64,000 nt of DNA, from positions 1-64,000 of the forward strand of contig JAAPAO010000078.1 in assembly GCA_013115145.1 (NCBI GenBank), written 5' to 3'. The notes beneath the pieces are model-generated. The model was not told the DNA's origin and did not search any database. It worked only from the letters and a program-made list of their open reading frames with translations. The DNA is from Perkinsus chesapeaki ATCC PRA-425. Taxonomy: Eukaryota > Protista > Perkinsozoa. Shown here in pieces: positions 18,400 to 58,300 of the stretch (position 1 is its first letter; each line of letters starts with the position of its first letter). A program made the position numbers and the translations under genes.

Positions 18400-21300
18400 C
18401 AAAAGCAGCAGAGATATACCAGTCTCTCTGAACGACCATCTCAAGCGACCTAGATCGTATTTGGTAACTTTACCGCAGGTACAATTCTCATCATCAACTC
18501 TAACAACCTGATCTGAGAATACCCCCGGCAGCTGCCGCCAGCCAAGAGGCCTACAAAAAGCATCGCAGCGATTCTCGTGAAAGAGTCCTTCAAAGATGGT
18601 ATCTCCCTGCACTTTTTGGCCAGGGCTGTGAGGACGTTAGCGTAGTCATGTATACAGAACTTGGTAACAGCCTTCACACAACATTCAGCCAGCTCTTCCC
18701 ACAGGCTCGGATCGCCGTATGTCGTATTAGCCAGCGCCCACATAGAGTTAGACAAGCAGTGGGGCGCCAATTCAGGAGCGTCGTCTCGGAGCTTCTTGGC
18801 GCATCCTTCGACCTGATGATAATCAACACGAACAATGACCGCTGCGCCACAAAATTGATGGCCTTACCAAGTCTGAGTAGTCGTTAACTTGGCCAAGTCT
18901 GACGAGACTCCAGAGGCACAGTGAGATGCTCTGAGCCGACAAAGTGCTCAAATTATCACGCAGTATATCACATATCTCTTCAATCAATGGCATAACCTAA
19001 CCAACGGTGATGTAATCCCACAATCCGCTGTCCCCCTTACCGAATTCGAACGAGTATGCCCGAGCTTCACTAGACCGTGAAGAAGCATGGCGGCATCTTG
19101 AGCACCCAAACCGGTAGTTGAATTTATCAGGTTCGCGCGATCTGCTAGGGCGTCGATGGCACAGCAATCGCAGACTCCCATACGAGCATACGCACTGAAT
19201 ATCGTGGCTGAAGTGGAAAGATGTTACCTTGTGCATGCGTACAGAAAGATACTATCTTACATATATCCGCTGTGCTGAATCGGAAGCTTTTGGATTTAAC
19301 ATAAGCGGCGGTGGCATCAACCAATTCTGGATCTTTAGCTGCAAGATCAACTCCCATGAACGCCAGAGCCCAAAGACATGTGCCTGAGCCAGGGATCGAA
19401 CCTCTGCGGGAAAGGACCACACGGGTTATTACTTAGCTGAGCGGGGGAGTACTTGTCCAGATGTTCGTCCATTTGCCTGGCGATCGCATCACAACACAGC
19501 GGGTCATGATATCCGAGCTTGCATAGGCCCCACGCCGCCGACGTGAGATCCTCACACGAGAATCTGATAGAAAAACCGTAAAATAGCTTCCGGCCTACAA
19601 CAGCGGACTCACTTCGATGCGAACTGGGCAACGTAAGCTTGGCAGGATTGTATGAGATCATCATGCTTTATCCCCACGCGGCCGAATGACTTTAAAATGG
19701 TCGCCACATCTTGGGGATTCAATCTTCCCGCCTGAAAGATGCCATACCGCAACTTCCTCAAACCAACCTGAAATGCAGCATAACCCACCTGTGCGTGCAT
19801 AAGTGCAACATATCCACATCTTTCAAAGACCATCTTAACTCTAGCTTGATCAGTAATATGTGGCATCAATCGACTTAACCCCCAAAGTGTCATAGATAGA
19901 TCTTGAGGGTTATACTTATCAGCTTGAGACAGTATCTAACAATAATACCACAACCTTTCCGTCACAACAAAAAACTGCTCAAGCAAATTTCCAATAACAA
20001 ATGATGCCACCGATTAAAGCCGTAGACTGAATGAACCCCTCAACGCGATGAGCTAACTGTGGCCAAATATTACCAGTACCGAGGACGGGCCACGAACCGG
20101 AGGCGGTAGCAGCTCATGAATACTTCTAATGCCGACGCCAAAGGCGTTTATATTACTCTATCACAGACTGCAGTGAAGTCTATTCCTTCATACCAATCGA
20201 TTTTAGCAAACGCCCAAATCGACCTTGAAATGTCTTGGGCGACATACTCGGATAGGTGGGCACAAAGATACCTATCATCAAGCTAACATTTCGAATGCAC
20301 TCATCAACCTAAGATACTACCCAACAACCGATCTTAAGAAGTTCGGCTCCTTAAGACCAACCTTTACATGTGCCCATAACATCTGTACAGCCACCCGAGG
20401 AGTACCTAAAAATACCGCTGCCGAAGATCGAACCCGCGACCCCCTACTATTTGCCAGCCTCGGTGTCGCATAGGTACACATATCCCTAACCGGTCCCTCA
20501 TAACCCAGCTTGCCGCATTGTTCACATATCCCCGTCAAAATCGCCAAGTCCAGGCCAGCCTCACTTTTAGCCTGACATCTCATCATCATCATCCACCACC
20601 ACCACCATCCGTAGTACATGGTCCGTGGAAAACACTCTATTGAGCTCATCTGTGATCCATTCTAGTGCATTACTGTTACTCGCTTTATTGCCACTGGTCA
20701 TCTTACGAAGTTGCCTGAAACAACAACAACAACAACAATCAATAAGGCTCTGCCTGTCAAGAAGATGATGATACAAAAGGGAAGATATATACACTAGCTT
20801 TAAACCCACTGTATAGTGCTGCCTTTACCCTATTTAAACCCACTGTATGATGCTGCCTTTACCCTATTTAAACCCACNNNNNNNNNNNNNNNNNNNNNNN
20901 NNNNNNNNNNNNNNNNNNNNNNNNNNNNNNNNNNNNNNNNNNNNNNNNNNNNNNNNNNNNNNNNNNNNNNNNNNAACTGTATAGTGCTGCCTTTACCCTA
21001 TTTAAACCCACTGTATAGTGCTGCCTTTACCCTATTTAAACCCACTGTATAGTGCTGCCTTTACCCTATTTAAACCCACTGTATGCCTATTACCTAAGAA
21101 CGTTATGTAGGTCCTCATCACCCGGGTCTCTATCAACCTGCGGTGGTGTCCTCTGCTGTTGCTGTTGCTGTTGTCTCTTTTGTGGAGGAGTCTGCGATCT
21201 GCGACCATCTGACACCAACAACAACAACTACATACGAAATGCTCAGGGCGAAAGCAGTCTCTAATAATCAGAATAAGCATGTGATCCCGTACGTTCAAAA

Positions 21301-22000
21301 CTCGTTCTAATCAGGATCAAGCAAACTAGAATTCGACATTTCCCACTTTCGAGTGACAGCTGCTGCTCCTCACACGCCCCATGAATATAGTATCCAGGCC
21401 TTTAAAACTCTCAAGAATAACCCTCAACATTTTTACAAACTATTCCACAAAGGAGTAATCCAATACAACCACATGTCCCCAATGATAACAGAATCTATGC
21501 TTTATATATTTTTATCAAATAAATTCCTATTGCATCTTCCCACTAGGAACTCGTTCGAGCTGTCGATGATAGACACCGTAATGCAGGATGAGCCACTACC
21601 TCTCACTCCCATAGCAAACAGTGAAGCTATTTTCACAAACGCCAGTGAAATCAACAACTGGGAGTCATCTACCACCCTAATCAAGCAAATGCGCAGGAGA
21701 TTCTTTGAAAATATTTCCTATATCAGAGACATTCCTTGTCGGTCCAGCAACAGCTTCTCCTCCATGACCCCCTACTGTCCACCTACTTCTTCCTCCACTA
21801 CTGCCCCGTCCGCCATGCTGTTGCTGGGAGTAATGACGCTGCTGCTGTTGGTAAGCACCCTGAGTAGCAGGCGACATCGGCCCATGTCCCAGGATGCTTG
21901 AGGTTGCGGATGGTGGCGGGGGGGTTGACGGTGACGATGACGATGATTGGAACTAAACGGGAGGAACGTGGACAAAATAACACTTCTTAACCTGCACACA
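18400..22000 (-). CDS. Helical-repeat (heptatricopeptide/RAP-associated-like) RNA-binding protein, multi-exon, probably organellar (ends approximate)
   Basis: Repeated units such as LTSAAWGLCKLGYHD, QLSTCLWALAFMG, SNSMWALANTTYGD, VATILKSFGRVG, VQMLWAHVKVG. Confidence 0.62.
19384..19432 (-). other. 49-nt intron with tRNA T-arm/3'-end-like sequence (sense)
   Basis: GTAAT...AGAG-GTTCGATC-CCTGGCTCAG|GCA; removal gives SPAQLSTCLWALAF. Confidence 0.7.
20406..20447 (-). other. 42-nt intron made of a tRNA 3' fragment plus oligo-T (sense)
   Basis: GTAGG-GGGTCGCGG-GTTCGATC-TTCGGCAGCGGTA-TTTTT-AG; removal gives RLANSTPRVAVQMLWAH. Confidence 0.8.
20799..21084 (+). repeat. 34-bp minisatellite flanking a 97-N assembly gap (20878-20974)
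   Basis: Unit CTGTATAGTGCTGCCTTTACCCTATTTAAACCCA, period 34 (20977, 21011, 21045), present on both sides of the gap. Confidence 0.95.
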
Positions 22001-22341: not shown

Positions 22342-25300
22342 TCAGATTTCATCAACCCTCGGCAGAAAGCTCAGCCGAAGCCCTCTTACCAGATTCCCAA
22401 AAAAACCCTTCGACTGATGATGATGACGCTGTTGCTGTTGTTGATGTGATCCAGATGGCGAGGCATATACCCCCGGCGGAGGTGCTGGAGGGGTCCCTCC
22501 TCCCCTCTGCTGCGACATCCTTTCCATCTGCCCAGGTCGGCCCGCCCCCCTCTGGTGGTGGTTGCCCGGTGCACTATTCCCTGTATCGTCGGAATCGCCT
22601 CCTCGACTGTTGCGGTGGAACGGCAAAGAAAAAGTCATTGGTTTTGATAATACAGATGGTGAAAGTGTACAGTAACTTGATCAGAAATTGGTCTGCACTA
22701 AACTCCAACTCGCCAGGTAACCGATGACAGAAATGCTTTCAAGGAACTGGGCTGGTCACAAATCAAAAATATCATTTTTGCTCCTCCGAATTCTCGCTCT
22801 TCGAGTTCACCGCTTTCGGACTTTCTATACCGTCATCTCCAACAAGATCGATAGAATCATTCATATTGCTCCCTTCCACAGTATCTACCCCACAGCTAGA
22901 GGTGTCAGAAAAGCATCTAGTGCTACTACTACCTGCCCCGAAGGGATCCCCTTTCCAGGCATCACCGGCCTCCCCCGGCACTTCATCTGTCGGCCATCCC
23001 TCGGGCGTTGATGAACCAGCCACCCATTTGGTATCCGCGACTGTGGGGGACGTGACCCAGCCAGAGCTCTCAGGCGGCCACCCTGCTACAACCGGTTCTC
23101 CGCTTTTTCCATCAGAATCTCCCCCTCCCCCTCCAGGCCAGACCGCATTTACTGGTGACTCCGCCCAATCACTCGTCACCGGTCCCGGCCACTCAGGTGT
23201 AGGAGATCTCCCTCTTGGTGATGCATCGTGGTGCGAGCCAGCTTGAAAGAACTCAGGAGAGTCGAAGGAGTCATCGCCGAGCATCGCTCCCGTAGTAGTA
23301 GTTGAGGGGGTCGTAGTGGCAGATGCCGTCGATGCCACAACTGGTGGAAGAGAGGTCACTGGCACCCCTGGACCACGACCTACCAACAACAACGTATCTT
23401 CCATATCCGCAATTCCCATCGGTTATATAACTTGCCGTCACTACAGTCATTTTAATATATATATAATGAATGTTACTTTTGCCATCTGCGGCAAATCCAG
23501 GAGGGCTGGAAAATGCAGTCTATTACATCAGAATCAATATCTAATCACACTTATTATAATTACACTTATTGCAATATACACAATTATATGTCACATCACC
23601 ACTGGCATGAACCCTTTACCATCCGAAATGGCTCTAACACCATCGATTCCCGCCATTTCCCCTCGTCCGAACCTCCCCATTTCTATTGCCTATTACCCAT
23701 ATCCATCGACGTGGCCTCCTCGGGCACAATCCTCGGTACTGTTATCGATCCCCCCAGATCGAGCTTCATTTCACGACATAGTCGCCACCGAGACAAGTAG
23801 GCCTCAGCCGCCGACGATTCTAGATGAAGGAACTCAGGCGATGTGGATGACTGAAAAATCGCCACGAACCTCGGCGGAGCGAAGGCCGAAAAATATTCAC
23901 CTGCGTCACTAGTAGGAGTATTTCTGCCACCTGAGGTCGACATCTGACAGAAAAAAGTATTATCTAATCATAACAACAGCGGGATGAATGGAACCCACGA
24001 CCTCTGGCTTACAAGGACACACGCTCTACCGCTCCACCATTACTACCCCATTATTATTCCTTCATCTCCCGCTAAACACTTTTCAATCATCTCCTTCTCC
24101 CTCTTAATTGCCCCAATTATATCATCATCATCCCCCAATTCATGCATCGCTCCGCTAAGCTCTAATACCGAATTTGCCAACAATGAGCAAGCCGAATGCC
24201 TCCGCAGCATCGCCTCCATCGCAACCGTCAAAAACTCGACACCGACCAACTTATCCGGCCGATCGCACTCGCTCGAAAATATCCGATTCGAGCACGCCGC
24301 CATTGCTGTCATCACAAGACATACTACCTGTAAACCACCATATTAATTTAGTGGCGCGTGACTTTTCCCTTACCTCAGTTAGCAGTTCTACATCTTCCTC
24401 CTCCTCCCCTTTTTCATCTCCGCCCACAATGTCTGTCATTTCCTTCATCCGGCTGCCAACCGCACCCGCGATGACTCCACCAGGAGATGTCTCTGTCACC
24501 TCTGCCACAGGGAGGCCGATGCCACTAGGGGTAGATGCCTGCAGCATTATGATGCCAGAGCATAATATGGAGGATGACCAGGAGACATGCGACACAATTC
24601 TAGTAGCGGGAAGGCCACACATTTCTACTTCAAACATGACTCCCGGAAAATCCATTACTCACACAAATAAAAGCATTAGGACACTCAGACCGCAGTCCTA
24701 AAAGCTTTCTTAACCACTATGGAAGAAACGGAAAGATTCCCCGCGCAGAAAATGGAAGAAGACCACCACCGCCAAAGATACTTACCAATCGACAGCAGCC
24801 ATCGTCCTCCCCTTGGCTCTCCTCCTCCTCATCATCATCACTGCTCTCCTCAAGAGCATCATCTTCGCAAAATTTCAAAAAGAATAATAAACTTGTTACG
24901 ACATTCGCAGCCCCTCCCTTCACAGGGGTATCTTTCGGCAGCGTCCCCGACACTATTCGACCTATTAACCTATCAATCTCATCAAGGAGGCCATTCGCCA
25001 ACTCTGGCACATACACTTGGTGCACATCCTCCGACGGGGAGCGATCTGATAATACCGACAACACTGTTAAGGATTGCTGTATCGATTAAATCAATAATCA
25101 AATTTGATTTGGTATTCACTGAAGTTCTATCCATTCACAACATCTTATAATATCGTCCTCATCTCCACCTCGGATTCCCCCCATACTCCAAAACCGAGGC
25201 AAATGGCACGGCTACGGTGAGTTACCAGCGAACTTCAAGTACAACCACAGATGGGCTCCAGGTGTTTATGAGAAGACCGCGCGCCCCAAAATCTCTCCAT

Positions 25301-26823
25301 CTCCAAGGTACGGGCTTTGGTACCACGAAGAGAGTTTCATGCGAGTCTTGAACCAACCAATACCGGACTGAATAACGCCAAAGAACCGAGACACATCCGC
25401 TCAAAATCGATTTTATACAAAATAGCTGTCACGTTATACTTACAGCATAACAGTTTCTGCAACAGCTCAGCACAGTTACGGGACACTTCTTCTCTGCCAG
25501 GCGCTTTGTCACAAATAACATCCACAAAGTCACGCGCCGTTAAATTACCAAATGGTACCTACGAAAGATACGCTCTTTAAATTCTTCCGAGTGCGCACCT
25601 ACCGCATTTTTATCCGAAGTTAAAAGCAAGTTGTATAGCATTTCGCAAGTAGACATATCATAAAGCAACGAGAGCAACGACGGTTTCAAGGATTCCTCCA
25701 TGCCCCCTAAAGCACGGGTCAACCTAAGATACGTCCAAACCTCCTACTGCATATTTTCGCCACATCTACCGGTCGCTTCTCAAAGATTGCCTGACAAGAA
25801 ATATTTTCCCGCCGAAATTGCATCTTACGCTGATCGCTCGGGACATGTAGCCTGCAATGACACAATTGAGAGCCTTTCCGGTTTGTGACGCCGTGACGTA
25901 CTGAAACAACAACAAGTCACTCGACGACCATCGGGACAATTCTGATGAGGAGAGCCGAACTGATCGACCGCACTAAAATCTAGGGTTGAACACGAGGGAA
26001 TGGTGATTCGCGTTTGGACGGGATCTTAAGGATGAGCCTCAGCCGACCCTTTCGTGACACGAGTCTTGTGCGCATCGCCGTCGAGTACGATGTCACCTGT
26101 AGGATCCGCGCACGAGATGGCGCGCCGCGCAACCAATTTTACAATGTCCATATGACAGTGAAAGACGTTTAATGAAGTCGGTAAAGCAAAGAGAAAGCTA
26201 CGCCGTCTCCTAGTAGTCCTCCTATAGAGCAACCTTCTTCTTACCGCTTTAAAAAGATTTCCCAATGCTGACTCTCCAGTGGAAACATCTTCATGGACCC
26301 ATGCATCCAGAAACGTATCATTTTCGCAACTTATAAGCTCAACGCATATATACGGGAGAACGTACTTTCCTGAAAGTGACTTTAGCGAAGCGAAGCGTTG
26401 CATGTTTACCGATTTTACGATCCAGACCCACCCCCTACCTACGAGTGTCGGACGCTCCATCTGGCGGCATTTCCGTTAGTATTTTAACCATACTCTGCAG
26501 ACTAGACTGAAAAAATATCTTTTCCGACCTCTCACAGAAAAAACCTGCTTCAACCTAAGATACCCCCTACTACCTTTTCACACAATCTGTCTACCAGCTT
26601 GCTAGACCCTGCTCTGAGCTCCTGAACGACTTCATCTGAGCTCAGTATTTCCTAACATTTCCATAACCACTCATCATTTTCCATCCACTACTTCAATTGA
26701 TGATTTATTTCCTTTATCCAGCAAATCATCCAGCCTGCTGAAGGATGACCCGCAACCGTGCAGCCAGCTGTTACCCCGGGAAGCTTTAGTCGAGAAAAAC
26801 GATCCAGCCCCGACGTACTCCAT
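22342..26823 (-). CDS. SIT4-phosphatase-associated (SAPS) / PP6 regulatory subunit-like protein, multi-exon
   Basis: N-terminal SRLDDLLDKG...EILSSDEVVQELRAGSSKLVDRL and KYVLPYICVELISCE match the SAPS N-terminal pattern; low-complexity C-terminal tail. Confidence 0.7.
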
Positions 26824-27290: not shown

Positions 27291-28673
27291 CTACGCCGCC
27301 TTGACCATTTTCGGTTCGTGTTTTCCGGTCTTGCATTTCGGTAGTGCCATAAAATCATCCCAATCATAGCTCCGTGCACCGCAGCATGACCACTCCTTCT
27401 TCAAGTCGTGGAAAACTGGCCTAAAATGCACCCCATGGGACTCGAACCCAAGCCAGTGGCTTCCCGTAAAGCGGCTGCATGCTCTACTGCTCCACTATTC
27501 CTCCAGTAGATTACTTCCCATCATGATAGTGGCAGCAACCTTCCACGTTATCCTCTGGATCATACTCCTTTCCGCAGCCAACGTGACAGCAGCGATATTT
27601 ACCAGACGGTGTAACCTAAGCCACATTCTTCACAGTGCGCAAAAGACTCCACCACAAATTATTCACAGTGCGCAAAAGATTCTACCACAAATTATTCACA
27701 GTGCGCAATCCTCCGAAGATCCCCCCATTACAAGCGGTTTCATTTCGACCTGCGGCTTTTCCTCAACCTTCTCCACTGACAAGGCCGGAGCTGGAGTATC
27801 TAAGGTCGAAGCCATCCGTCTGGACTATGAGCTCACAAAGATACTCTTGCTCTCCTTCTCAGTTGTGTCTATTCTAACAGGTGCAGACGACGGCATGGTC
27901 ACCAAGCCGCTCGAATTAGTATCTATCCGTTGTGGGGTAGATGACTGTACTGATGCTGCCTGATCCTCAGCTTTGGCTTGACCAACACCTGAAATGCATC
28001 CACTGGGAATCGAACCCACGACCTTCAGCTTGTAATCCGCATTGCACACAGAAAACTTCGGCCTATGTTTTTGGATCCCTCCTCTGCGTTCCCGTACATA
28101 TTCATCGAGCAATTCGCGCAGCTCAGCCGAGGACGCTCCCTTCGTACAACACAATCGGATTGTGTTGTTGTGTTGTGACAATCCCAACACTAGCCAGTGG
28201 CTAGTAGCCACCAATTCTATGCGAATTTAATAACGAAACTTCACAGCCCCACTGCTGAAAGATATTCCACCCTATTACCCGGCTTCACTGGTTTAACATC
28301 CGTATGCTCCCCAACTGCACACCCCGGAATCTGCATGAACTCATCCCAGTCATACTTTACTGCCTGCCATCCACAAATCTTACACTAACCTCGCTATAAC
28401 CCCACCTACCCCACAGCACGTCCATGTCTTTTTTATATCTTGGAACACGGGCCACCCTGGATGATACCGACATGCCTCAGGACCGTTGGTCGCATCAGTA
28501 TACCTATTCACCACATCACCAAAGCTCACACAACCATCCTATCACTTTTTACCGCACCCGTGGTGCCGACATGTCTTAACAACTTCACTGCTATCAGTCA
28601 TTATTCAACAGGAACTGTAAAACCCGAAACCCAAAACCCGAAACCCGAAAATAAAACCCGACAAGTGATCCAT
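27291..28673 (-). CDS. Protein with two CHORD zinc-binding domains (multi-exon)
   Basis: CRYHPGWPVFQDIKKTWTCCG...FMQIPGCAVGEH and CCHVGCGKEYDPEDNVEGCCHYHDGK|PVFHDLKKEWSCCG...FMALPKCKTGKH. Start is tentative. Confidence 0.85.
27421..27514 (-). other. 94-nt intron ending in a tRNA 3' end plus oligo-T (sense)
   Basis: ...TAGAGCA...TTGG-GTTCGAGT-CCCATGGGGTGCA-TTTT-AG; removal restores CHORD HDGKPVFHD. Confidence 0.82.
27629..27708 (+). repeat. 33-bp tandem repeat (about 2.4 copies) in a CHORD gene intron
   Basis: TTCACAGTGCGCAAAAGA starts at 27629 and 27662; the partial third copy starts at 27695. Confidence 0.9.
27989..28045 (-). other. Intron 3' end made of a tRNA-Val(TAC)-like fragment plus oligo-T (sense); donor not fixed
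   Basis: atTACaa-GCTGA-AGGTC-GTGG-GTTCGATT-CCCAGTGGATGCA-TTT-CAG|GT. Confidence 0.65.
28619..28660 (-). repeat. Short interstitial telomere-like tract (TTTCGGG/TTTTGGG variants)
   Basis: + strand aaaacccg aaaccc aaaacccg aaacccg aaaat aaaacccg, inside the putative first CHORD intron. Confidence 0.55.
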
Positions 28674-28769
28674 GAGTAAGAAACCGTAAACTGGACACGT
28701 CTCTTGCCTATGACGCCTCATCGGTTAGTGGTAAAGGAGACAACAACAGCAGCAAGCGAGGACCGCTTT

Positions 28770-30428
28770 TCAATTTTCAAACTTAGAGTTAGGAGTCTTC
28801 GGACTCGCCATTATTTTCATTCTTTCCTCCCCCATGCTATCCCCACTCTTTGGTGCGCTCAACAGACTCTCTGTGAACGTGAATTTCTCCTCTTTTGGGA
28901 CCTGAAAAATACCTTTACCAGGATTCGAACCCGCGACCTCTTACCAATTTCAACAACGGTAATCGCATGACCAGTGCGACCAAATAAATATACGCCGTCA
29001 CCACAAACGTGTAACGATAATCATGATTATCCATCAAATACCCCCCAATAACAGCCGAGCCAGACCAAGTCATCGACGACAGAGACTCCAAAGCATTCCA
29101 CCTGCCACGTTGATGAGATGGCACGAAGTCCATAATAATCGATCTATCTACCGGATAGATAGCATTCTGCACCGCACCACGGATCAGAAAAGTAAAGACG
29201 ACCGCCGGCAGCCATCTGACCCAGGCCAGACAGAACAGGCATATCACACCCATTGACGAGAAAAGTATCCCAGCTTGGACTCGACCGATGTGATTAGCAA
29301 CTTTATCACAAAACCAAGTGAACAAGCCAAATGTTAGGCCGTAAAATGCCCACAGTAGCTGCACTTGAGTTGGACTGAAATTGTAGTCGTTCTTGAAGAA
29401 TAGAGGGAAGAACTTCACTGTCATTCCAGCTCCTATACAAGTGATAAAATCATTGGCACACATCAGATAAGGAATCGTCCATGTCCATTTAGACGTAACT
29501 TTCCTGTGCACGCGTCCACCTAAGATTCATACAGCTTCTCAACAATCTATGTAATATTCCCTATCACCTTCACGGTTGCCGCTGTTGCCGCCGAGGCCAT
29601 CCTCATGGCTCACATCTGTCCATCCAAACAAGAATAAATTAGCCGGTATAAAGCCCAGGAAGCCAATAATCAACACCGTATGCAGCACACTGAGCCTCCA
29701 TGCATTCCCAAAGTAAACAAACAGGAAGAGCCCGATGAATGGACCGATTCCCGAGGCTAGCTGATTCACCACAGAGGCCCAGGTCAGCCACTTGGCTCTG
29801 TGGCCTTGAGGGATCGAGTCCGCGAAAAGGGAATATGTTGCGCAGTTTTGGGTGGCGAAATAACCACCGGCAACGGCGAGTGCAAAACATAAAACTATAA
29901 TCTGAAGAAGATATCTTCTGGAGGTCTTATGTGCACGCTTCGAGCTAAGATGCCATGATCATCCCCGTTATTACGTTATCGAAGTGTATTCCGTATATTG
30001 ATAGAGCAACCATCACCAGTGATGCCCATCCGCATAAGCGACAAATCCGAGCTCGAGAGAATCTTTTAAAAAATATCCGACCTAAGATACCATCTGCATT
30101 AGCCTACTTATCAACCAAGATTCCTGCGGGTATGGCCGCAATGACCTGACTCAACCCAGAAATAGATTCAGCCCAACCGACAGCTTTATTGGAATCACCA
30201 GCCATCACGTAAAGGTAGGCGTCAAATATACCCATTTGGGCGATAGCTTGACAAATACCTTGAAGAGCTGAGAACCTAAAGAGTATCTATGTCGACCGTG
30301 CAAGATACAAAATAGGTTGATGTCTACATCAACATGTGATAAATGTTCTTCTTGCATGCCTTTTCAAAGTCCTCTTTATCTGTTATTGGAGATAAGACTT
30401 GATGTCCCAGATGATTGGTAGTGGGCAT
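28770..30428 (-). CDS. Major facilitator superfamily transporter (multi-exon)
   Basis: Multiple TM helices; motifs CDKVANHIGRV, DFVPSHQRGRWNALESL, IPAGILVDK. Confidence 0.85.
28902..28944 (-). other. 43-nt intron made of a tRNA 3' fragment plus oligo-T (sense)
   Basis: GTAAG-AGGTC-GCGG-GTTCGAAT-CCTGGTAAAGGTA-TTTTT-CAG; removal skips an in-frame stop and gives LPLLKL|VPKEEKF. Confidence 0.85.
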
Positions 30429-30439
30429 CCTCACAGAGA

Positions 30440-46400: not shown

Positions 46401-46458
46401 TTTCGGCAGGGTTGTTGTGGAGTACTGTTGGTAGTAGCCCTGAACGTTTCATTATCCA

Positions 46459-48175
46459 ATGCCAGAAGTAGAATCAAAAAAGAGATCTTTAGATTCCGAC
46501 AAGGTTAAGTCGAGCACACCCGAAGTTATCTTTGGTGATTCCAAAATCGAAGTTGCCGGTAAAATATCTATCTCACATTAATGCACAGTCCCCATCAGGT
46601 TTATCGGACCCCACAGAGGTCCCTCTTGCCCGGACGTTCGACGAGTCTGGTCTGAGAAAGTCTCTTAAGGAGTATCTTAGCTCCAAGTTTTCCACTCCTT
46701 CCGCCATCCAAGCTGCCTGCTGGCCCCTCTTGCTTTCTGGTCTCGATGTCGTCGGTGTCGCTGAGACCGGCAGCGGCAAGACCCTCGGTTTCGCATTGCC
46801 TTTCATGTCGAAGGCTATGAATAAAGGAAATGACGGTATGATGATGGTGTTATCTCCCACTAGAGAGCTGGCGAGGCAAATCCACGAGGTTATCGTTGAC
46901 GTTGACAAGAAGAAGCAAAAGTTGCCTTCAATTTGCCTGTACGGCGGCACTCCTAAGTGGGAGCAGCAGAAACAGTTGAAGGCTGATAAGCCTCGAATAG
47001 TGATTGGCACCCCCGGAAGGGTCTTAGATCTCCTCCAGGACGGCTCATTGGACTTCTCTAAGGTTAACTATGCAGTTTTGGACGAAGCTGATCGAATGCT
47101 CGACATGGGGTTCCTACCGAGTGTCACGCAGATCTTCGGATATCTTCCATCGGCTGATAAGAGACAATCTCTTATGTTCTCAGCTACGTGGAATAAGGAG
47201 GTAATAAGGTAATTTCGTGGCGAGTGAGGATTGGTCACAGGTACGAAGATTATCTAGAAAGTTGATGAAGCGTGAGCGCATTACTGTTACTGTTATGGGC
47301 AGCAATGAGACCAAAAGCAACCAGGATGAGTTGACCGCCAATACTCGTATCACCCAGATGATCGATGTGGTCCACGATAGGAAGCCTAAGATGGACCGTC
47401 TATGGCATCATCTTGGTAACCTATGCCCTAATAAGGGAGTGTGGAAGGTAATATAAAGGGGATCGGAAGAGGAGGACTCAGCAATCGCCGGGATGTTGGA
47501 AATCTGTCACAAAGTCTATTTTTATACGAAGAGTGTTGGCTATCAGGTTATTGTGTTCGCACTGTATAAGAAGGAGGCAGCCCATCTCGAGCGATGCCTC
47601 AGGGACTACTATGATGTAGTGGGTCTTCATGGCGACATGACACAGTCCGCTCGGGAGGCCTCTATTAAGCGGTTTACCGAGGGGCAAAATCTTATATTAG
47701 TAGCTACTGATGTAGCAGCTAGAGGCTTGGATGTTAAGGACGTCACTGGTGTTATTAACTACACTTTCCCTTTGGTTATTGAAGATTACGTTCATAGGTG
47801 AGAGAGCGACGCAGGTTCGAATCCCAGGGAGGGCATTTTTCAGGATTGGCCGTACTGGACGTGCAGGGCGGACGGGCAAGGCTGTTACCATCTTGAATGC
47901 TGATGAGGAGAAGCAGTTCGCCTTCGATCTTAAGGGACTTCTTGAGCGATGTGGCCAGGAGGTAACTTCGGTAGCGGTTGATGGGGAGTACTTGGTATGG
48001 CCAGGTACCTGAGGCTTTGAGTAAGTTGGCAAACCAGACGGGTGGGTTCAAGGCGAGCAAGAAGAAGGTTCATCCCATTTATGGGGCATTCTTCAAGGAT
48101 GAAGAGGAGATGGCAAAGTTAGAGGCGAAGAAGACTCATATTACCTTCTCGGATGATGATGAAGATGACGACTAG
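46459..48175 (+). CDS. DBP3: DEAD-box RNA helicase, Dbp3-like (multi-exon)
   Basis: AETGSGKT, PTRELA, TPGR, DEAD, SAT, LHGDM, ATDVAARGLD, HRIGRTGRAG (after splicing); Dbp3-type tail YGAFFKD...HITFSD. Confidence 0.85.
47798..47843 (+). other. 46-nt intron made of a tRNA 3' fragment plus oligo-T (sense)
   Basis: GTGAGAGAGCGACGCAG-GTTCGAAT-CCCAGGGAGGGCA-TTTTT-CAG; splits helicase motif VI (HR|IGRTGRAG). Confidence 0.9.
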
Positions 48176-48623: not shown

Positions 48624-51600
48624 ATGCCTAGAGTCCAGGAGTATCGAATAGTCCTTCCAATGGAGGTCGAGCAATACCATGTTGCCCAGCTCTACATGGT
48701 CGCCAAGTCTAGCCTGGAAGATACTACTGGCGGGGCTGGAGTGGAAGTGGTTACAAACGAACCATATGATGATGGTAGTAGTGGTTTGGTGTAGTGGTTA
48801 GTATGTCAGCCTTTCTCAGGGGAGACCCAGGGTCAATTCACTCATAAGCGCATTTCTATCGCACCGTATTTGCCGTCTTGGGTAACATCATTGGTGAATC
48901 CTGATTGGCTGGTATTCGACGAGAAGAGTTGGAATGCCTTCCCTCGGTGCCGTACGGTCTACTCTTGTCCGATGCTTAGTGAGTTCTCGATGGAGATTGA
49001 TAGTATGCATATTGAAGGCAATTGTACAGATGATAACGCTCTTAAATTGGATGGTAACAAGCCGACAGTTTTTACGCTTTTTCTATCAGTTTTTGCCAGA
49101 TGCGGATCTTGCTAAGCGTAAAATTGACTTCATCGATATCGTAAACGATCACATATCCAGCAGGGATTATAATGAAGAAGAAGACCCGTCAAAATGGCAT
49201 AGCGAGAAGGTAGATGGAGACAAGCGTTCGGACGGGGAGATGCTGTTTGCAGCTCGACATGGGACCTTTGGAGTCTGACTGGATGCAGACGACTCAGCCG
49301 ATCATGACGTGTTACAAGGTACTAAGGGGAAGGGGGTTTGGTCACCTGGGGGCGGCGTCGGCGGGGGGGAGGTGTTATTACGTGCTGCTGCGATGTGATA
49401 ATACGATTTGATTGTCGATTCGGTGCTTAATAGTGCGGAGTGGAAGAAGCATGGAATAGTTACATTCGTTGCATGTGGACGTAGTTTATATCGAGTGTCA
49501 TTCATTTGAGTGGTTATCAGGTTATTCATGTTACCTGTAATCCTGGGTTTATGATGCAGAACAGAGTTGAAAGTTTTATAGTTAAAGCGACTAAGACAAC
49601 TCTATTCAAGTAGTAAGGGGATGGATACTTGATAAAGGGGCGAATCCTGCCCAGTCGAGAGGACATGACAATAATGCCAATGTAGAGTGTATTCAGCGAT
49701 GGTCTGAAGCTGAATAACTGAGTTGAGTAGTTCAATTACTAACCATTATTTCCTTCGCCACATTGAGGCCGATATCAATTGGTTTCGATTGCCGTCGTTG
49801 GAAGGCTGTCGTTGGCCTTGCCGTTTTTAACAGCGTACATCACCATTTCTCGAAATTTACGCATTCTCTGTTGGCGTGGAAAGCATTGGTATTAAAGGAC
49901 GTATGGGCTCCATAAGCAGCAGGAGTCGGATTGATTATTACCGTGGTTGGCTACCTTTACGCTACGTAGCTGGGGGGAGCAGGGTGGAATCTCGAACCTC
50001 GCAGGTATCATCGAAAATGTGTGTGCTGGGCGGATGAATGGGCCGATCTGACGATGGATGATATTCGATTGATGGAGGATAAAGTCCAGAAGAAGCTGCG
50101 GAAGTTCTGGAGGGACAAACGGATTGAGGAAGGCTTGGAAGTTGCCAGCGATTCTGACGCCAGCGAAGTGCAGGGGGAGCTGGAGGGCACCCCTACTGCG
50201 GATGAGGATGCCTCACCCGGCAGCGCAACTGGCCGCCGATCTCGAACTGCTAGTCGAGCATCAAGCAAAGATACCACCGGGTTGCTAACAGTTACGGCAT
50301 CACCGGTGGATCCGGCTAGGACTAGTGTGAGTGCGAGTGTTAATAATGACATAGCGGCGAGCGGTAGAGTTGGGGCTAGCCATAAGTGCAGCAGCATCAC
50401 TGGTGGAGGAAGCGGTGTGGAGGTTATGAGGGCTGGATCGCTGTTTAAATTGGGGGATGGTATTATAAATACCAGCTGGAATGAGAGGTAGTAGTGGGGG
50501 GAGGGAGGGTTGGTAATTTCGTGGCGCGTGACAAGGAATTGGGAATACTGTTGTAGGGAGGTAGTATGGGAATAGGATTTAATCTATTTTGTTACTCGTT
50601 GATGGGGTGCATGTTCGATCTTTACGTCGCGCGCCACGAAATTAGTTGGTGACGTGAACTCTGCTCTTCAAGGTTGGTGAAAAAGCATTTAGTAGGGTTA
50701 TGATTTTGAGAATATCGTCGAATAGGTGGAGAGTCATCTCAATTACGATAATGCCGATCGGTGTTCGATGACCGAGAGGTGGGCAAGCATGCAGTCTGGC
50801 AACTGCTGCTGCTACCAGCTTATCGATCGAGAAAGGAAGGGGCGTAGTGCGTAAACAACTGCGAGGTGTTACTGCTTTTGGCATTCAAACTAGCACTGAT
50901 GTGTTGTGAAGTGGGGCCTTGAATGATGTATGTTTAGATACTTTGTGCTGTCGGGATCTGTCCTGAGCTATTATAGAGATTCGAGGGAAGTACGACCGAG
51001 GGAGAGTATACCGATGAAAGGGGCTGTAGTGCAGTGGTGTGGCTCACATAAGGGAAGAGAGCATGCCTTTATAGTCGTAATAACGTCACGCGCCATGAAA
51101 TTGTACGGTTATTCAGATGCCCAAGGACCATCGCAGACAGGTTGTTGTGTCTGGTGGAAGCGAGGGCGAGACGCGTCAGTGGATGCTTTGGTGTCAGGAG
51201 GCCGCAGATAGGGCTACGGCCTCAACGACACCTGGGCCAACCATGGAGGCATCTCCTAAGGTGGCTATGGTAGCTGAAGGAGAGCCAAAGGGGGGCGAGG
51301 GAAAGGTGAGTGGCGGTCTTTGGAGGGAAAAAGCAGTGTCTATCTTAGGTTGAAGCGCGCTCTTCGGGTGGTGGAGTAGTTCGCGAGAAGTCTGTTGATA
51401 AGGCTGGGCCGTCGGTGTCGTCTTCGTCAGGGGGCCTTCTGCCAGATGCCTGTACGCGGTATTTGCCTAAAGACCCTTTAAGAGGAATGGAGAGCCTTCT
51501 GAGGTTTGCTAGATGTGGATATCAAAGGAATGATATGTGTATGGTGTAAGTTGCCGGGGGTGGGGATCGAACTCGGGTGGGATGCCTCTGAGCAGGTCAA

Positions 51601-52682
51601 CTGATCGAGGGTTGAGGATTTGGCGGCAAATGGACCCTGTTGATGAGGAGGCCGGTTTGACGGTTTTTCTATCAAAAGTGTGGTCTGAGGCTACCAGAGT
51701 GGATTTCTATTCCGTCCCTTTGTCTATCGCCTTTGCAATAACTACCCTCTCCGTTTTCGTCATCCTCACACTCGGTGCTTTACTGACACCTCTAGCTGCA
51801 TTCATCCTCGTAGTGTGGTCCAAATGCCTGCTGGAAGTGTTCCCTATTGCCGAGGCCGTCAGGGAGGGTACTTCCAGTGGTGTTGTGATCGGTGAGGTTG
51901 TTGTGCCCACCACCGACAGCAGCATGGTCGAAGCCGCTCTTTTGGATGTATCCGAGTGGCATCGTTGGAGTCCGGCGCTGAAGTCTGCCGCTGCCTACAG
52001 GCTGTCTACTACTGGTCTGGGTCTTGTTAAATACGGCGGAGCGGAGCTTACTGAGCGAATTATTCGTCCTAGAGAGGAGGGGCCACCTAGCGTAGGTCCA
52101 TGCCAGGAACAGCAAGCTTGCCTGCCATCACTAATAGTGTTGCATTACGATAGCAAGGCAAATGAGAAGTACTTTTGCTGGGCGGTGTTCCCGGGCCCTA
52201 AGTCAGTGTCGGTGCTGATGCTGAGCGCTGGTGGCCCCGGGAGAGCCATAAGGGGCCTGAGGTTTGTGCGAGAGTATCTTAGCTCGCTGCAAGTTGCCCC
52301 TGTAGTGTGGCCGAGACCCTTGCCATCACTACCGGATATGTTTATGCCACGAGGGAGCCAACATGTTCATGCGAGAAGGAGAGGGTCTGGTGGATGGGTG
52401 GAGCTACCGGTGCCTTATGGTGTTAAAGGCCTCGACTCGGCATTAAAGAGGGCATTGTTGCACAACTCAGAGGAGGCTATTGTTGGCGGTAGGGTAATGG
52501 CTGATGAAGATGACCGTGGTGGAGCGGACGTGATGCCGACTCTTATGGGTGGGAGAGGAGGCGGAGCGAAGTTTTTTTATGGTTTTTGGTTTCAGCGTTG
52601 TCGCATCTATTCATCCAATCGAGTGCGTATATGCCAAGAGCGAGCACGGCTATTGTTAATAACGATAGTTGCCGAGCGGTAG
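48624..52682 (+). CDS. Phosphatidylinositol transfer protein fused to a PH domain and a TM/START(SRPBCC)-like C-terminal region (multi-exon)
   Basis: PITP: QEYRIVLPMEVEQYHVAQLYMVAK, NEPY, GQFTHK, YHRKCVCWADEWADLTMDDIRLME. PH: GSLFKLG..WNER|YFVLSGSVLSYY...ETRQWMLWCQEA. The C-terminal START-like call and the 3' end are less certain. Confidence 0.8.
48775..48819 (+). other. 45-nt intron containing a tRNA 5'-half/A-box-like sequence (sense)
   Basis: GTAGTA-GTGGTTTGGTGTAGTGGTTAGTATGTCAGCCTTTCT-CAG; removal gives PITP YDDG|ETQGQFTHK. Confidence 0.65.
50514..50644. mobile_element. 131-bp MITE with 19-bp TIRs and 5-bp target-site duplication, in the PH-domain intron
   Basis: TAATTTCGTGGCGCGTGAC ... 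GTCGCGCGCCACGAAATTA (18/19 match); GTTGG on both sides (50509-50513, 50645-50649). Confidence 0.85.
51546..51594 (+). other. 49-nt intron with antisense tRNA T-arm/3' end
   Basis: Reverse complement reads CCGA-GTTCGATC-CCCACCCCGGCAA-CTTAC; splicing keeps the frame (DMCMV|STDRG). Confidence 0.55.
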
Positions 52683-52749
52683 GTTTGAACCGGGGTCTTT
52701 TGGATAGCAGTTGGGCGCTTCCCCCGCTGGGCTATAAATGTGTATTTCA

Positions 52750-53822
52750 GTTACAACTGGTGGGAGCGTGCATAGTGGCCAGTCTACAACGTCTTCTTTG
52801 TGCCCTTGAAAGCAGTGATGCCTTCCTAACCACATCTGCAGCAGCTGCCCGGACCCCTGGTTACCGAGCCATCATAACTCCTGGAGACACATGCCAATGC
52901 AAGACGATCCCTCGAGCTGGTCGAGGCCATGGAGCTGATATTTGCTGGGAGGCAGTGGCGCCCGATTGTGCTCATTATTTAGTGACAGAGGAAGAGGGCT
53001 GCGGGAGATGGACGCAACGAGGCACGATAAAGTGAGAAAAATACCCTCGGTGGGATTCGAACCCGAGTCGTGCTACTGCAGGTTTGGTGTATCATTATTG
53101 CCTCCTACATTGAAGTACAGAACTACTGGGATAGCTCTCAACCTCACCGGAAAGCACTATATCGACTTCCTCAGTAGTGAAGTCAAAAATGCAGCGGAGC
53201 GGAGCTCTAAGAGAACTGCAAATAAAGGCATTACCGCCTTCGTGACAGAGCTACCACGGCTGGTAAAAATGCCTGTTGCCGGAATCGAACTCGAGACCTT
53301 CTTCCTCTCGTAGGTCTGTCGCCCATTGAGTGGTTCCTCCAAGCATTGCTTGTTACGTTGGGAGGGCAAAGTATCTATCAACATTCCCGGAGCCAACGGT
53401 GGCATTTGCGAGCTCTCCATTGTGGATCCATCCAGCGGTAAGTTATCTCGCTGTTCTTGTTCAACCCGGATGAGGGAGGATTCAGGCCGAGTGGCTGGAG
53501 AAGTCCGAAACGGTCGTGGTGGCCTGCATAGTGTTGGAGAGGGCAATATATTCGACCGTGTGTGCTTCGATGGCGAGCCACTTTGGGTTAGCGGCCTGTG
53601 CCCCGAGGATTTAGCGGCGTCTTCCGAGCATGCCGCTGAAGCCTTCCCTCCAACGTCCCCAGTTGTCGAGATAAAGGTAGGGTGCCGGGATCGAACTTGG
53701 GACCTTTCAATCGCATACTTCAGGTTGAATCTAGCAAGCGTCTCTTGCCGACTGATTGTCATACTCATCGATTGATTGGTCGCCGGCGCCGGGTCCAGTC
53801 GACCAAACCATTACAGGAATAA
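52750..53822 (+). CDS. Hypothetical Cys-containing protein with three tRNA-derived introns (start not resolved)
   Basis: A continuous frame appears only after removing 53032-53081, 53263-53313 and 53677-53723: GTIK|FGVSLL...LPRL|VCRPLSG...VEIK|VESSKRLL...QE*. Confidence 0.6.
53032..53081 (+). other. 50-nt intron, antisense tRNA 3' end plus oligo-T
   Basis: Reverse complement GACTCGG-GTTCGAAT-CCCACCGAGGGTA-TTTTT-CTCAC; removes an in-frame TGA. Confidence 0.8.
53263..53313 (+). other. 51-nt intron, antisense tRNA 3' end plus oligo-T
   Basis: GT-AAAAA-TGCCTGTTGCCGG-AATCGAAC-TCGAGACC...TAG; links two ORF-track ORFs in frame. Confidence 0.82.
53677..53723 (+). other. 47-nt intron, antisense tRNA-Phe-like 3' half
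   Basis: Reverse complement CTGAAG-tatgcg-ATTGAA-AGGTC-CCAA-GTTCGATC-CCGGCACCCTAC. Confidence 0.7.
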
Positions 53823-53940
53823 TTGCCTCTATCATCCACTGCCTTATTGTAGCATTTCTACCACTTTTTTCAACTCCTTGGCATTTGAGTTAACCAAGTG
53901 GGAGGGGGTCGGGCCCGCTGCAGTCCCTAATTCGCTCACT

Positions 53941-54665
53941 ATGCTCCTCACCGGCTCACTCCTCTTTTTTTGCTCGGTGTACGGAGCACCCTTGTGGGAC
54001 TCTGAGACTTGTCTGGAGGAATGCCCCGAGCTGGCTCAATCCGTGGCACTGCTGGAAGCTTTGGTTCTATCTCCTAAACTAGCCGCGGCCGCTCTATCGG
54101 GGAGCTATCAAGCCGGGTGGGAGGAGTATTTGACGCTTCGATCAGATTGATTGCCGTGTGTAGGTATAAGGCGGTCCGCGAGGACAAGGTGTACTCATGT
54201 GTGGCGGAAAAGCTATGTGGAACGTGTTTAGAGGTGAGCAGGGATCGAACTTGGGACCTTTGGATGAGGATTAATAAGTTTGTTGCTCTACCGTTCGGCC
54301 AGGAATCCACGTGCACGATTGGGCGATGCATTGTCGAGAATGTCGCATGTCGGGCCTTAACCGATTTCACCTCGGATCTAGTTAAGATATGTTACTGCTC
54401 GATTGGTGAGCCACGACCCTACCCTTCCCTCTCAACCATCACTTCAGGTTACAACATCGCTGTCTTAAATGGGATGGTTGACCCCCAGTGGTCATCAACT
54501 GACCCTCCCTTCTGCGAAGGTGGTGTGAATGCTCCTCAAGGAACAGCAGAGACTGTTCAGGAATCATGCAGAGGTCGGTCACCTCGTTGGTTTAAGTATC
54601 CAGTATTTTGCATTGTTGGACAGCGCCGCAGTGTTGGCTATATGCGGCCGTTGCCACTCGGCTGA
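53941..54665 (+). CDS. Secreted Cys-rich protein (multi-exon)
   Basis: Signal peptide MLLTGSLLFFCSVYGAP; Cys-rich exons YSCVAEKLCGTCLE|ESTCTIGRCIVENVAC. Confidence 0.6.
54234..54302 (+). other. 69-nt intron consisting of a near full-length antisense tRNA-like sequence
   Basis: Reverse complement GGCCGAACGGTAGAGC (D-arm-like) ... AAAGGTCCCAA-GTTCGATC-CCTGCTCAC. The length is a multiple of 3, so splicing is inferred, not forced. Confidence 0.6.
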
Positions 54666-55386
54666 GAGGGAAAGGAAGTTCCAGAGGAATAATTTGCCTA
54701 ATTTTTTCGCGAAATTTGTAGATACTTGTCAGAATTCCGGTAGACTTTCGGATAGGATATGAATCGCAGCCACTCGATTGGTAAATATTAGGCCACGGTG
54801 ACGGAAGGCGGAGAAGAATCCAAAGGATACAATCGGGATACAGTCCGTTCAGTTGTTGCATGTGTATTGTTGATGCGCATTACGTCGCCAACCTAAGGCT
54901 GTGGTTGGGGTCAGAGGCCCCATTTATTTTCCTGTTGTCATGTCACAACAGCCAGTTCGACTCGATAACCTTATGTAGCGACACACCTATACTGTCGACT
55001 ATCTCCAATACAACAGCTGCTCATAATGTTAATTTCGAACCGGCTGCGGCGGCGGTGGTCCTATGGCTACGCCATGACTTATATGGTTGAATTTTAAACC
55101 GTAAATAATTCCATGTGTGTGAAACATATCCGTAGAGACAACAGCTTCTCGCTCGCTTCCCCTTCAGATTTCAGTATTTCCGACTTCATCGGTGGTTCAC
55201 CGCAGACAGAGGAGCCAACCGAAAATGCCAAGGGGAGTTCAGCGGAGCGAAGCAGCAGATTACGCATATACCTGATATCACTCTTCAGCTTCCTGTGGGG
55301 CGTGTTCATGCTTTTATAGCTTTGATGTTGTTACTTACTATCTCGAGTTCTGCGGGGCACCGCGGTATGGTATTAGCCGTTTGTAA

Positions 55387-56496: not shown

Positions 56497-56588
56497 TTGA
56501 TCTCCCTCCTCGAGAAACATTAAGAAGTGGAGATATAATAGAAACCCTTGTTCGCGCTCAACATTTAATATTGCAGTGTGTGAGCGCC

Positions 56589-58300
56589 ATGCCGCCGGTT
56601 TGGTTAATCTACTAGGGATTACTTTAATATTAGTTATCAATCTCCATTGTTCTATCGCTCACTGATAATATTGTTAGTATCTAGCACGGCACCTGTCCAG
56701 GTCATGGTATAGTCCCGGATGTTTTGAGATTCATTATCATCCTTGCAATCAGGTCCTATGCTTCCTACAACTCTGTCGGCTATCAAACCATCCAGCAGCC
56801 AGTTGGCTATTCGAAGAAGCTGAGAGACTTCGAGAAGCAGAAGTTAAAAGGCAAAAAGAGACCGAGGAGAAAGAAGCGGTAAATTGATTTAAAATGCCGC
56901 GTGCCGGGTTCGAACCCACGCCATTTTAGTTTGCAGCAGTCAGTGCAGCTGCTCGCGCTACTGCTGACGTAATAGGGCCTCCTGGACCGCCAATCTGTCT
57001 GGACCGCGCGGCCACTATGGCGTTTTTGACAGCAGGTGAGCGTCACTCTGCCAATCGATTGATGTCACTCATGTCGTTTCAGTTCTTCCAACTCTTCCGA
57101 GCAACGTCTATGCGGTAGGCATTGACTCGGGTTCGATCCTCGGCAGAGGTGTTTCTTTTATCAGGTTCTTAGCTCTGGTGTCTACCAAGGCCTTGAAGCT
57201 GGTATAGTTAATAGCAACTTCGATGAGGGTATGAGGAGGGTCCTGCAGAACTATGCCATGGCTACCTCAGTGTAAGACACATATCGCCATTCTCAAAAGT
57301 ACGGGCATTTGAAAATAAAATGCCGTACCTGGGATTCGAACCCGAGATCTCCGTCCCTGTACAAAGGGTGTGGCAAGAATGATGGGTTCTGATGGTAGGT
57401 ACCTGGCTCACCGTAAATCGATGATAAGGGTTCATGGGACTAACGAGTCGGCGTTCCCAAGTAGATCCACTGGAACCAGACGAGCTCCGGCTGCAAAGGG
57501 AAAGAGGAAACGAGCAACAACAGGAAGAGGAGCAGCAGCAGCCAAACAAGCTTCTACTAGCTCTGAGGAGGTATGTGAGAGATAACGGCTGATAATTATA
57601 CCAAATTTCCGTCGAATCTACGGGCATATCCCTGTCCTAGCTGACATTAGTTATACCACAAGTGTTGCCATGATTTCCTGAAGAGCGCGCGTTGTCCTAG
57701 AGTGTGACGTGGGAAGATTTCCTGAGGGAGATTCGAGGCAGATTTCCGAGAGCAATGTCAACACCCTAAAGAGAGTGAAGGGTAGTTATTGCGAAAATAT
57801 TTCAGAACGGTCAAGGTTCGAGCGAGGAGGCCAGCGTTGAGGCTACAACACCTGAATCGGATGAGAGTACTGAGCTATCAAGGCAACCGGTTCGGCAAGC
57901 TAGGAAGAAAAGGGTAACTTTTGACGGAAAAAACGTAAAAACTGTCTCGTTAAGGCGAAGGCGTCTTCATCCTCCGAAGTATCTGATGACGATGCGGCGG
58001 TGCCAAAGAGACGGTCAACTCGCCGGACTCGTGCAGCTGTGAAGGTAAGTAAGGTATTTCTGGACGCTCCTATGCAGCATTTAGACCGAGAGAGGAGCAT
58101 CATCATCTGAAGCTGAGGAGCCAGTTGCTAAGCGTGGTCGAACAAACAGGAGAAAAGGCAAATCAGCTGGCAGCGCGGGGGACAGCTCGGTGGTGAGCGC
58201 TACACAAAGACTAGGGGAGGAACCGACAATGGAAGGCCGAGAACGAGTTGCGCTTGAGATGCTGGTGGAGATTCTACCCCCTACACTTGCACATGAGATG
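56589..58300 (+). CDS. Hypothetical multi-exon charged protein hosting tRNA-derived introns (approximate)
   Basis: VLCFLQLCRLSNHPAASWLFEEAERLREAEVKRQKETEEKEA|FAAVSAAARA...; FFQLFRATSMR|FLALVSTKAL. Confidence 0.5.
56879..56929 (+). other. 51-nt intron, antisense tRNA (Leu-like) 3' end plus oligo-T
   Basis: Reverse complement GGCGTGG-GTTCGAAC-CCGGCACGCGGCA-TTTT; removal gives EKEA|FAAV in frame. Confidence 0.75.
57115..57164 (+). other. 50-nt intron made of a tRNA 3' fragment plus T-rich tract (sense)
   Basis: GTAGGCATTGACTCGG-GTTCGATC-CTCGGCAGAGGTG-TTTCTTTTAT-CAG; removal gives TSMR|FLAL. Confidence 0.75.
57311..57365 (-). pseudogene. tRNA 3'-half fragment, antisense within a probable intron starting at 57272
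   Basis: CCCT-TTGTAC-AGGG-ACGGAGATCTCGG-GTTCGAAT-CCCAGGTACGGCA-TTTTATTTT. Confidence 0.65.

Follow-up and report, generated by a model that had tools for sequence, protein, structure and literature searches.

Short introns of the protist Perkinsus chesapeaki contain the remains of dead tRNA genes, and within these remains one block, the B box of the internal RNA polymerase III (Pol III) promoter, has resisted decay. We analyzed 64,000 nucleotides (nt) of contig JAAPAO010000078.1 (positions 1 to 64,000, hereafter the window), considering relic introns mainly between 19.4 and 57.4 kb, and counted 16 introns that carry such relics, about one in eight of the predicted introns (∼16/∼133). As a preliminary description of this DNA had proposed, these introns are short, lie in unrelated genes and hold tRNA sequence in either orientation. 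That description overlooked what appears to be the main point, which is that selection keeps the B box. The pattern of constraint suggests that the B box GGTTCGANNCC (tRNA positions 52–62) is probably still used, and we consider it probable that the relics are old, eroded tRNA genes in which this box is under purifying selection at the DNA level, with TFIIIC as its most likely reader. Our literature searches turned up no account of tRNA-relic introns, either in Perkinsus or in other organisms.

The pattern GTTCGA-N15-TTT occurs 12 times in the window as compared to 0.56 expected, and none of 100 shuffled sequences attained 12 matches. All ten places listed in the preliminary description (GTTCGA, two further nucleotides, 13 nt and TTT) are among these matches, with coordinates and strands correctly given; of the two extra matches, 53673 is another relic and 44110 is not tRNA-like. 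The exact B box is found 10 times, at nine distinct sites, against 0.44 expected in the window, and five further copies with one mismatch share the same tRNA-like context. The relics are built from the 3' parts of tRNA genes: T arm, acceptor strand, discriminator base and the oligo-T of the Pol III terminator. Of the 13 relics whose B box has at most one mismatch, nine have a T run that begins immediately after the discriminator base, and none has a CCA, in agreement with the composition reported earlier; the acceptor ends quoted then are also correct and vary from copy to copy. Most relics begin 3' of the anticodon arm, and an A-box pattern is not enriched in the window (3 hits vs 1.9 expected). 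ARAGORN identified no tRNA genes in the window or in three related Perkinsus loci (L001–L003, below), and the Rfam tRNA model, run on the whole window and on short stretches, returned a single partial match (9786–9839) and matched none of the intron relics. The nine exact and five one-mismatch B boxes are consensus boxes without a functional Pol III gene, located in relics that are not tRNAs.

The relics reside in spliceosomal introns. A dynamic-programming gene finder, which recovered all five RNA-supported introns of the DBP3 gene and 35 comparatively defined introns, predicted 133 introns with a median length of 49 nt covering 15% of the window. Thirty-four comparatively defined introns measure 40–51 nt in all but four cases. 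Eight of the nine distinct exact B-box sites fall in predicted introns (p = 2e-6), and the ninth, at 28006, is intronic as well, as indicated by orthologous CHORD proteins. The available RNA runs covered the DBP3 gene only, with no RNA on 19.1–25.1 kb and none listed for 52.5–58.4 kb. In DBP3, the relic intron 47798–47843 and four other introns are skipped in RNA contigs of two runs with GT..AG removal, and splicing of 47798–47843 restores the DEAD-box motif VI HRIGRTGR. Of the junctions anticipated in the preliminary description, this one is therefore seen in RNA; the others rest on a domain match, orthologues, conserved exons or the gene model. The CHORD Pfam match is unbroken across the spliced junction of 27421–27514 (E = 6e-13). 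Beyond these two introns, orthologous proteins together with exon conservation back 12 more, among them 27989–28278, whose exon ends were set by two orthologous CHORD proteins of other Perkinsus genomes. Exons conserved on both sides, in matching phase, flank the introns at 23944, 28902, 51546, 52679, 53032, 53263, 53677 and 54234 in comparison with Perkinsus marinus and those at 20406, 23944, 28902 and 47798 in comparison with a third Perkinsus species. Codon bias in the window is weak, so the gene-model calls at 56–58 kb are provisional.

The terminator is positioned at the splice sites. In sense relics the T run is followed by AG within 0–3 nt (TTTTAG, TTTCAG, TTTTTCAG), and in antisense relics its complement makes up the donor or lies next to it (GTAAAAA, GTGAGAAAAA). 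Antisense orthologues keep the T run inconsistently, so it appears to be retained for splicing rather than for termination. It would be kept where splicing can use it, as a pyrimidine tract in sense relics and as a 5' splice site in antisense relics.

To date the relics we used two colinear relatives. The P. marinus locus (L001) is colinear with the window at 17.7–24.5, 28.8–30.5 and 46.4–61.6 kb, and a locus of the third Perkinsus genome (L002, GCA_013115135.1), reached via the CHORD exon, is colinear with 16.7–50.3 kb. Protein and fourfold-site identities are 0.76 and 0.36 between the window and P. marinus, 0.79 and 0.38 between the window and the third species, and 0.84 and 0.49 between P. 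marinus and the third species. The window's species is the outlier of the three, and its silent sites are saturated relative to both others; ordinary orthologous introns align no better than shuffled sequence. Across this distance, a relic is found in the orthologous intron at 13 of 13 testable loci. The same eight loci whose exons are conserved in P. marinus carry a relic in that species, and seven (19384, 20406, 23944, 27421, 27989, 28902 and 47798) carry one in the third species. Among the compared orthologous introns, none has a relic in one species and lacks the intron in another. The relics predate the split of the three species and are not recent insertions.

Orthologous relics differ in what they have lost. 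At 23944 a D-arm-like 5' body of ∼40 nt is kept in the window, partly kept in the third species and absent from P. marinus, while at 52679 P. marinus keeps the acceptor and terminator (19 nt) that are lost in the window. Decay has reached even the B box, in one or two species, at 54234 (in P. marinus), 23944 (in the window) and 48778 (in the window). Since orthologues keep different extents of the same relic, the ancestors were full-length genes and the apparent 5' truncation is later erosion. Bases 63–65 are stable across species and different across loci, indicating several different source tRNAs. In another relic intron, at L002 11796–11851 and L003 1414–1465, the two copies are ∼60% identical with the B box kept, the exons are ∼97% identical and the genomes ∼90% identical overall; in the orthologous window segment (∼26500–26570) the B box is lost (GGTTGAAGC).

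These results bear on the origin proposed in the preliminary description, in which 5'-truncated pre-tRNA retrocopies or captured pieces of tRNA genes landed in genes and made or remodelled introns, so that any conservation would be incidental. We consider this unlikely, although it is the best of the alternatives. Retention of the terminator and lack of CCA speak for it, as do the restriction of the relics to introns and the placement of the terminator directly at the splice site in both orientations. The ∼35 relics and lack of a live or intact tRNA gene in 110 kb of Perkinsus DNA suggest past amplification, and two non-Perkinsus CHORD genes have no intron at two relic positions, both of these genes being intron-poor. 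The expected empty sites did not appear, however: all 13 testable positions are common to species at saturated divergence, which refutes recent gain. The truncation is unlike between orthologues at 23944 and 52679, as erosion of complete genes would leave it, and full-length relics exist (27994–28078 and 54234–54302). Landing of gene fragments also leaves the constancy of the B box alone unexplained. The many copies may reflect either an ancient burst of copying or a long accumulation of selected relics. DNA contigs from elsewhere in the same genome match the terminator, acceptor and T arm of the relic at 20401–20440 with 4–5 differences, indicating that close paralogues or a source tRNA gene exist.

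Conservation within the relics is concentrated in the B box. Relics were ascertained in one species and the aligned bases scored in the other, with ordinary introns as background (55% identity with P. marinus and 57% with the third species). At the nine fixed B-box positions, 98/108 bases are identical between the window and P. marinus, where most relics are antisense (p = 2e-15), and 97/106 between the window and the third species, where all are sense (p = 2e-14). These positions are thus 91–92% identical vs 55–57% in the background for both species pairs and both orientations. Identity at tRNA positions 63–65 is 85% with P. marinus and 82% with the third species, and at positions 44–51 it is 69% and 65%. 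Positions 59–60 are 54% identical with P. marinus and 82% with the third species (n = 22), and the acceptor strand (66–73) is 58% and 57% identical. In both pairs the remainder of each relic intron is at background level. When 41 intron pairs were scanned without bias for conserved blocks, seven emerged, six of which are B-box relics. The sole non-relic block, CGTCACGCGCCAYGAAATTRTA at window positions 51077–51116, is 20/22 identical with P. marinus (L001 9950–10000).

The constraint does not extend to RNA structure. The outer T-stem pairs 49–65, 50–64 and 51–63 are paired in 26/60 cases, no different from the 37.5% chance level, and the relic intron RNAs fold no better than shuffled sequences. 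Together with the failure of the tRNA finders, these results argue against RNA structure as the conserved feature, and with the asymmetric B-box pattern seen in both orientations they point to recognition of double-stranded DNA.

A sequence motif could still act in the pre-mRNA, for instance as a splicing enhancer needed by very short introns or, given the likeness of UUCGAAC to UACUAAC, as a branch site. The TTCGAA core is palindromic, so either orientation would give a similar RNA; in several introns the adenosine precedes the 3' splice site by 20–25 nt; and the elements are confined to introns. Many copies, however, read GTTCGATCC, which is not palindromic, and their RNA differs by orientation while the antisense and sense sets are equally conserved. 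The conserved pattern is that of the asymmetric tRNA B box, with 59–60 freer, and is neither symmetric nor branch-site-like. Ordinary introns lack any conserved internal motif, and the relics show no excess of RNA folding. We regard a role in the pre-mRNA as improbable.

Even less probable, in our estimate, is that the relics are neutral and were kept tRNA-like by gene conversion from live tRNA genes, or by periodic replacement at the same introns. The bases at 63–65 and 44–51, which are locus-specific and have no consensus across loci, would fit this reading, as would the other genomic loci that match 20401–20440. Conversion would nevertheless restore T-stem pairing and the acceptor, and we find the outer T-stem pairs random and the acceptor at background. 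The derived mismatches CCTGGT are shared by all three MFS relics, which indicates common descent of an already decayed copy, and the conversion tracts would need to be only ∼20 nt. Spread of a tRNA-derived short interspersed element (SINE) or an introner family through introns is scarcely credible despite the high copy number, intronic location and use of both orientations: there is no A-box enrichment, no tRNA-unrelated body or tail (nor room for one in introns of 43–51 nt), no difference in presence between species and no family consensus, since copies share only tRNA-universal positions and bases 63–65 are kept across species and differ across copies. The preliminary description, too, had rejected a single SINE family.

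We therefore return to the reading in which a selected B box persists in eroded tRNA genes. Complete tRNA genes of several kinds would have sat in ordinary GT-AG introns before the three species split, and deletions and substitutions would since have worn each relic down towards the minimum intron size of ∼45 nt. The block that resists, the B box with a few flanking bases (∼44–51 and 63–65), would be held by purifying selection working on the DNA sequence rather than on an RNA fold. In tRNA terms the B box is the T stem and loop, and the tau-B module of TFIIIC binds it at nanomolar affinity and makes further contacts immediately downstream (PMC12409998). We infer that this B-box-binding module is the most likely reader, which would make the relics similar to extra TFIIIC (ETC) sites placed in the bodies of Pol II genes. 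ETC sites are bound B boxes that neither TFIIIB nor Pol III occupies, and they have insulator roles (PMC12409998). Binding at the relics might then serve insulation, the organization of chromatin or condensin, or residual Pol III transcription.

Several observations weigh against this reading. There is no exact B box between genes in the window, which the ETC model leaves unexplained. Positions 63–65 are kept locus by locus with no shared consensus, which a simple binding-site model would not predict, and positions 59–60 are somewhat conserved in the second species pair (18/22). Decay of the box in single species, at 23944 and 48778 in the window and at 54234 in P. marinus, indicates that no one site is indispensable. 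Each species comparison was read in two directions that depend on one another, and the loci sampled number ∼13. To our knowledge, ETC sites elsewhere are few and intergenic, and nothing we know of explains a need for them at about one intron in eight. A 2006 survey found, by homology, only the Tfc1 and Tfc4 (tau-A) subunits of TFIIIC in alveolates (PMC1540719), and the B-box-binding subunit in Perkinsus is putative. Literature searches turned up no ChIP or CUT&Tag map of TFIIIC in Perkinsus. A broader proposal, which we put forward tentatively and hold to be less likely than the selected B box itself, is that Perkinsus maintains a genome-wide set of possibly thousands of such recycled B-box pads from dead tRNA genes in tiny introns, through which TFIIIC or another reader would organize chromatin or modulate Pol II and Pol III traffic along gene bodies. 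In a stronger version, copies of tRNA genes may also be a major raw material for building introns.

The relics in minus-strand genes are mostly sense. The FAST/HPR-like gene contains a 49-nt intron (19384–19432, gene model) with an exact B box at 19392–19402; its 3' splice site falls in the former acceptor strand, splicing yields SPAQLS|TCLWALA, and the orthologous third-species intron (54 nt) is ∼88% identical end to end in a hand alignment. In the 42-nt intron 20406–20447 lies a sense relic whose B box is weakened (GGTTCGATCTT) and whose T run leads directly into AG. This intron is in frame in the window, but its orthologue in the third species, which also carries a relic, has 52 nt and therefore has to be spliced. 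A nearly full-length decayed sense tRNA occupies the 103-nt intron 23944–24046, compared in a three-way alignment, and its B box, intact in both other species, has decayed in the window (GGTTCCATTCA). A 94-nt intron of the second CHORD domain (27421–27514) carries a long sense relic with an exact B box at 27438–27448 and a T run followed by AG; the relic in the orthologous third-species intron has a weakened B box. The 290-nt CHORD linker intron (27989–28278) ends in a full-length sense relic of 85 nt (27994–28078) with 6/7 acceptor pairs, an exact B box at 28006–28016 and TTTCAG, and the third and fourth genomes have a relic in the corresponding position. The 43-nt MFS intron (28902–28944) is a sense relic almost throughout, with the T run as its pyrimidine tract. 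Its flanking exons are 82–95% identical in protein, and the three-species alignment has the invariant block GAGGTCG.GGGTTCGA..CCTGGT.

The relics in plus-strand genes are mostly antisense. An exception is the 46-nt DBP3 intron 47798–47843, which splits DEAD-box motif VI (H-R/IGRTGR) and carries a sense relic with an exact B box at 47814–47824; the third species has an orthologous relic intron, and in P. marinus an assembly gap of Ns (L001 7332–7431) lies exactly at this place, so that the P. marinus DBP3 gene model (248 amino acids) is truncated. The 42-nt PITP intron (48778–48819) contains a decayed antisense relic whose B box is left only in the third species (L002 1170–1180). We had considered this intron as a conserved 5'-half (A-box) relic, which the antisense B-box relic of the third species rules out. 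Antisense relics follow in the 50-nt intron 51546–51595, where the 5' splice site adjoins the former trailer and a 27-nt block is conserved with P. marinus; in the 72-nt intron 52679–52750, where the relic is nearly full-length with acceptor and terminator lost in the window; in the 50-nt intron 53032–53081, with GTGAG followed by the complement of the T run and an exact B box at 53053–53063; in the 51-nt intron 53263–53313, whose 5' splice site GTAAAAA is the terminator complement; and in the 47-nt intron 53677–53723, whose 5' splice site is made by the acceptor strand. The 69-nt intron 54234–54302 is nearly a whole antisense tRNA, with the B box kept in the window and decayed in P. marinus.

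Three further plus-strand introns are predicted by the gene model only. The 51-nt intron 56879–56929 has an antisense relic with a palindromic exact B box (56906–56917), the 50-nt intron 57115–57164 has a sense relic, and an intron of uncertain boundaries (∼57272–57377) has an antisense relic with an exact B box at 57332–57342. The best-preserved relic, at 9786–9849 on the plus strand, lies outside the range of the preliminary description. It spans positions 7–64 of the Rfam tRNA model and is antisense in the predicted intron 9704–9871. Fourteen of the 17 window relics lie on the minus strand, with a sense to antisense ratio of 6:1 in minus-strand genes and an antisense to sense ratio of 8:2 in plus-strand genes (Fisher p = 0.015, binomial p = 0.013; the loci are clustered and so not independent). 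The exceptions are those at 47798, 57115 and 9825. This co-orientation along the chromosome, rather than with the host genes, hints at a link to replication or domain structure.

The wider locus is divergent between the species. For a 381-amino-acid exon of the window, the sole database relative is a P. marinus protein with 55% identity, and a search with the protein P0001 likewise returned only this P. marinus protein. Gene content differs strongly: ∼11 kb of the window has no counterpart in the third species and ∼16 kb has none in P. marinus (regions 30.6–42, 56.06–57.97 and 24.5–28.8 kb), and the P. marinus locus lacks the CHORD gene and its neighbours as well as the 56–58 kb gene. Pfam gave no match for the open reading frames (ORFs) of the window-specific 30.6–42 kb stretch (ORFs at 32.5–43.6 kb) or for a few other unannotated ORFs, and at 31624–31733 there is a weak, sub-threshold match to the snR40 C/D box snoRNA (25.9 bits vs a cut-off of 50). 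In RNA contigs from the window's own species, the two types of Perkinsus spliced leader, one with the extra T and one lacking it (sequences as in PMC3101222), are joined to the 5' end of DBP3 at 46433–46436, and a second leader-like loose end is found at 46833, within the coding region. One RNA contig has 13 differences from the DBP3 exon at 47060–47203, indicating an expressed paralogue or a divergent allele. An assembly gap at 20878–20974 lies inside a 34-nt tandem repeat (20799–21084) in a 379-nt intron (20715–21093) and belongs to no relic. DNA contigs of two runs end at 20828 and restart at 21055 without bridging it; the exons on both sides of this intron are colinear with the third species, and no relic relies on the gap.

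Short introns are usually taken as neutral spacers. Across the three Perkinsus species, with one exception, the sole conserved content of introns is a Pol III promoter box derived from dead tRNA genes. The relics give a detailed record of resident Pol III genes eroded to minimal intron size, with the terminator donated to splicing signals, and relic introns offer a practical marker for gene annotation and for the training of gene finders in an economically important shellfish parasite.

The closest known systems are the ETC sites of yeasts and humans and the chromosome-organizing clamps of Schizosaccharomyces pombe, which, like the relics, are isolated and sometimes extended B boxes without a working tRNA gene (PMC12409998). 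ETC sites are likewise kept by selection and read as DNA independently of orientation (PMC12409998); occupancy of the relics by TFIIIC is a candidate property. The two differ in number and place: yeast has just eight ETC sites, and known sites are intergenic or close to promoters, while the relics are in tiny introns, about one in eight of them. Unlike ETC sites, the relics are visibly descended from tRNA genes that have decayed, and in many of them the terminator persists as a splice signal. If TFIIIC does bind them, they would constitute by far the densest known set of extra TFIIIC sites and the first to be built systematically into Pol II genes, and they would provide a tractable system for studying ETC function, as P. 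marinus can be cultured and transfected.

Three other systems share single features with the relics. The tRNA genes and pseudogenes nested in introns of animals, including nematodes, are also Pol III genes in Pol II introns, in either orientation, that decay after death. Nested tRNA pseudogenes elsewhere decay uniformly, however, while the Perkinsus relics keep one promoter block through saturated divergence and fill nearly the whole intron. Introners, as in Micromonas, Aureococcus, fungi and Amoebophrya (PMC7789003), resemble the relics in that recognizable sequence families form entire introns of numerous unrelated genes, but introners are young and near-identical, frequently carry inverted and direct repeats and may be present in one strain and absent from another, whereas the relics are old, dissimilar and shared across species. 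SINEs of tRNA origin that were exapted into insulators bound by TFIIIC (the B boxes of mammalian B2, MIR and Alu elements) are similar in that Pol III boxes, dispersed in many copies, are reused as protein landing sites. In contrast to these mammalian elements, the relics have no SINE body or tail and no A box, derive from several source tRNAs and are strictly intronic.

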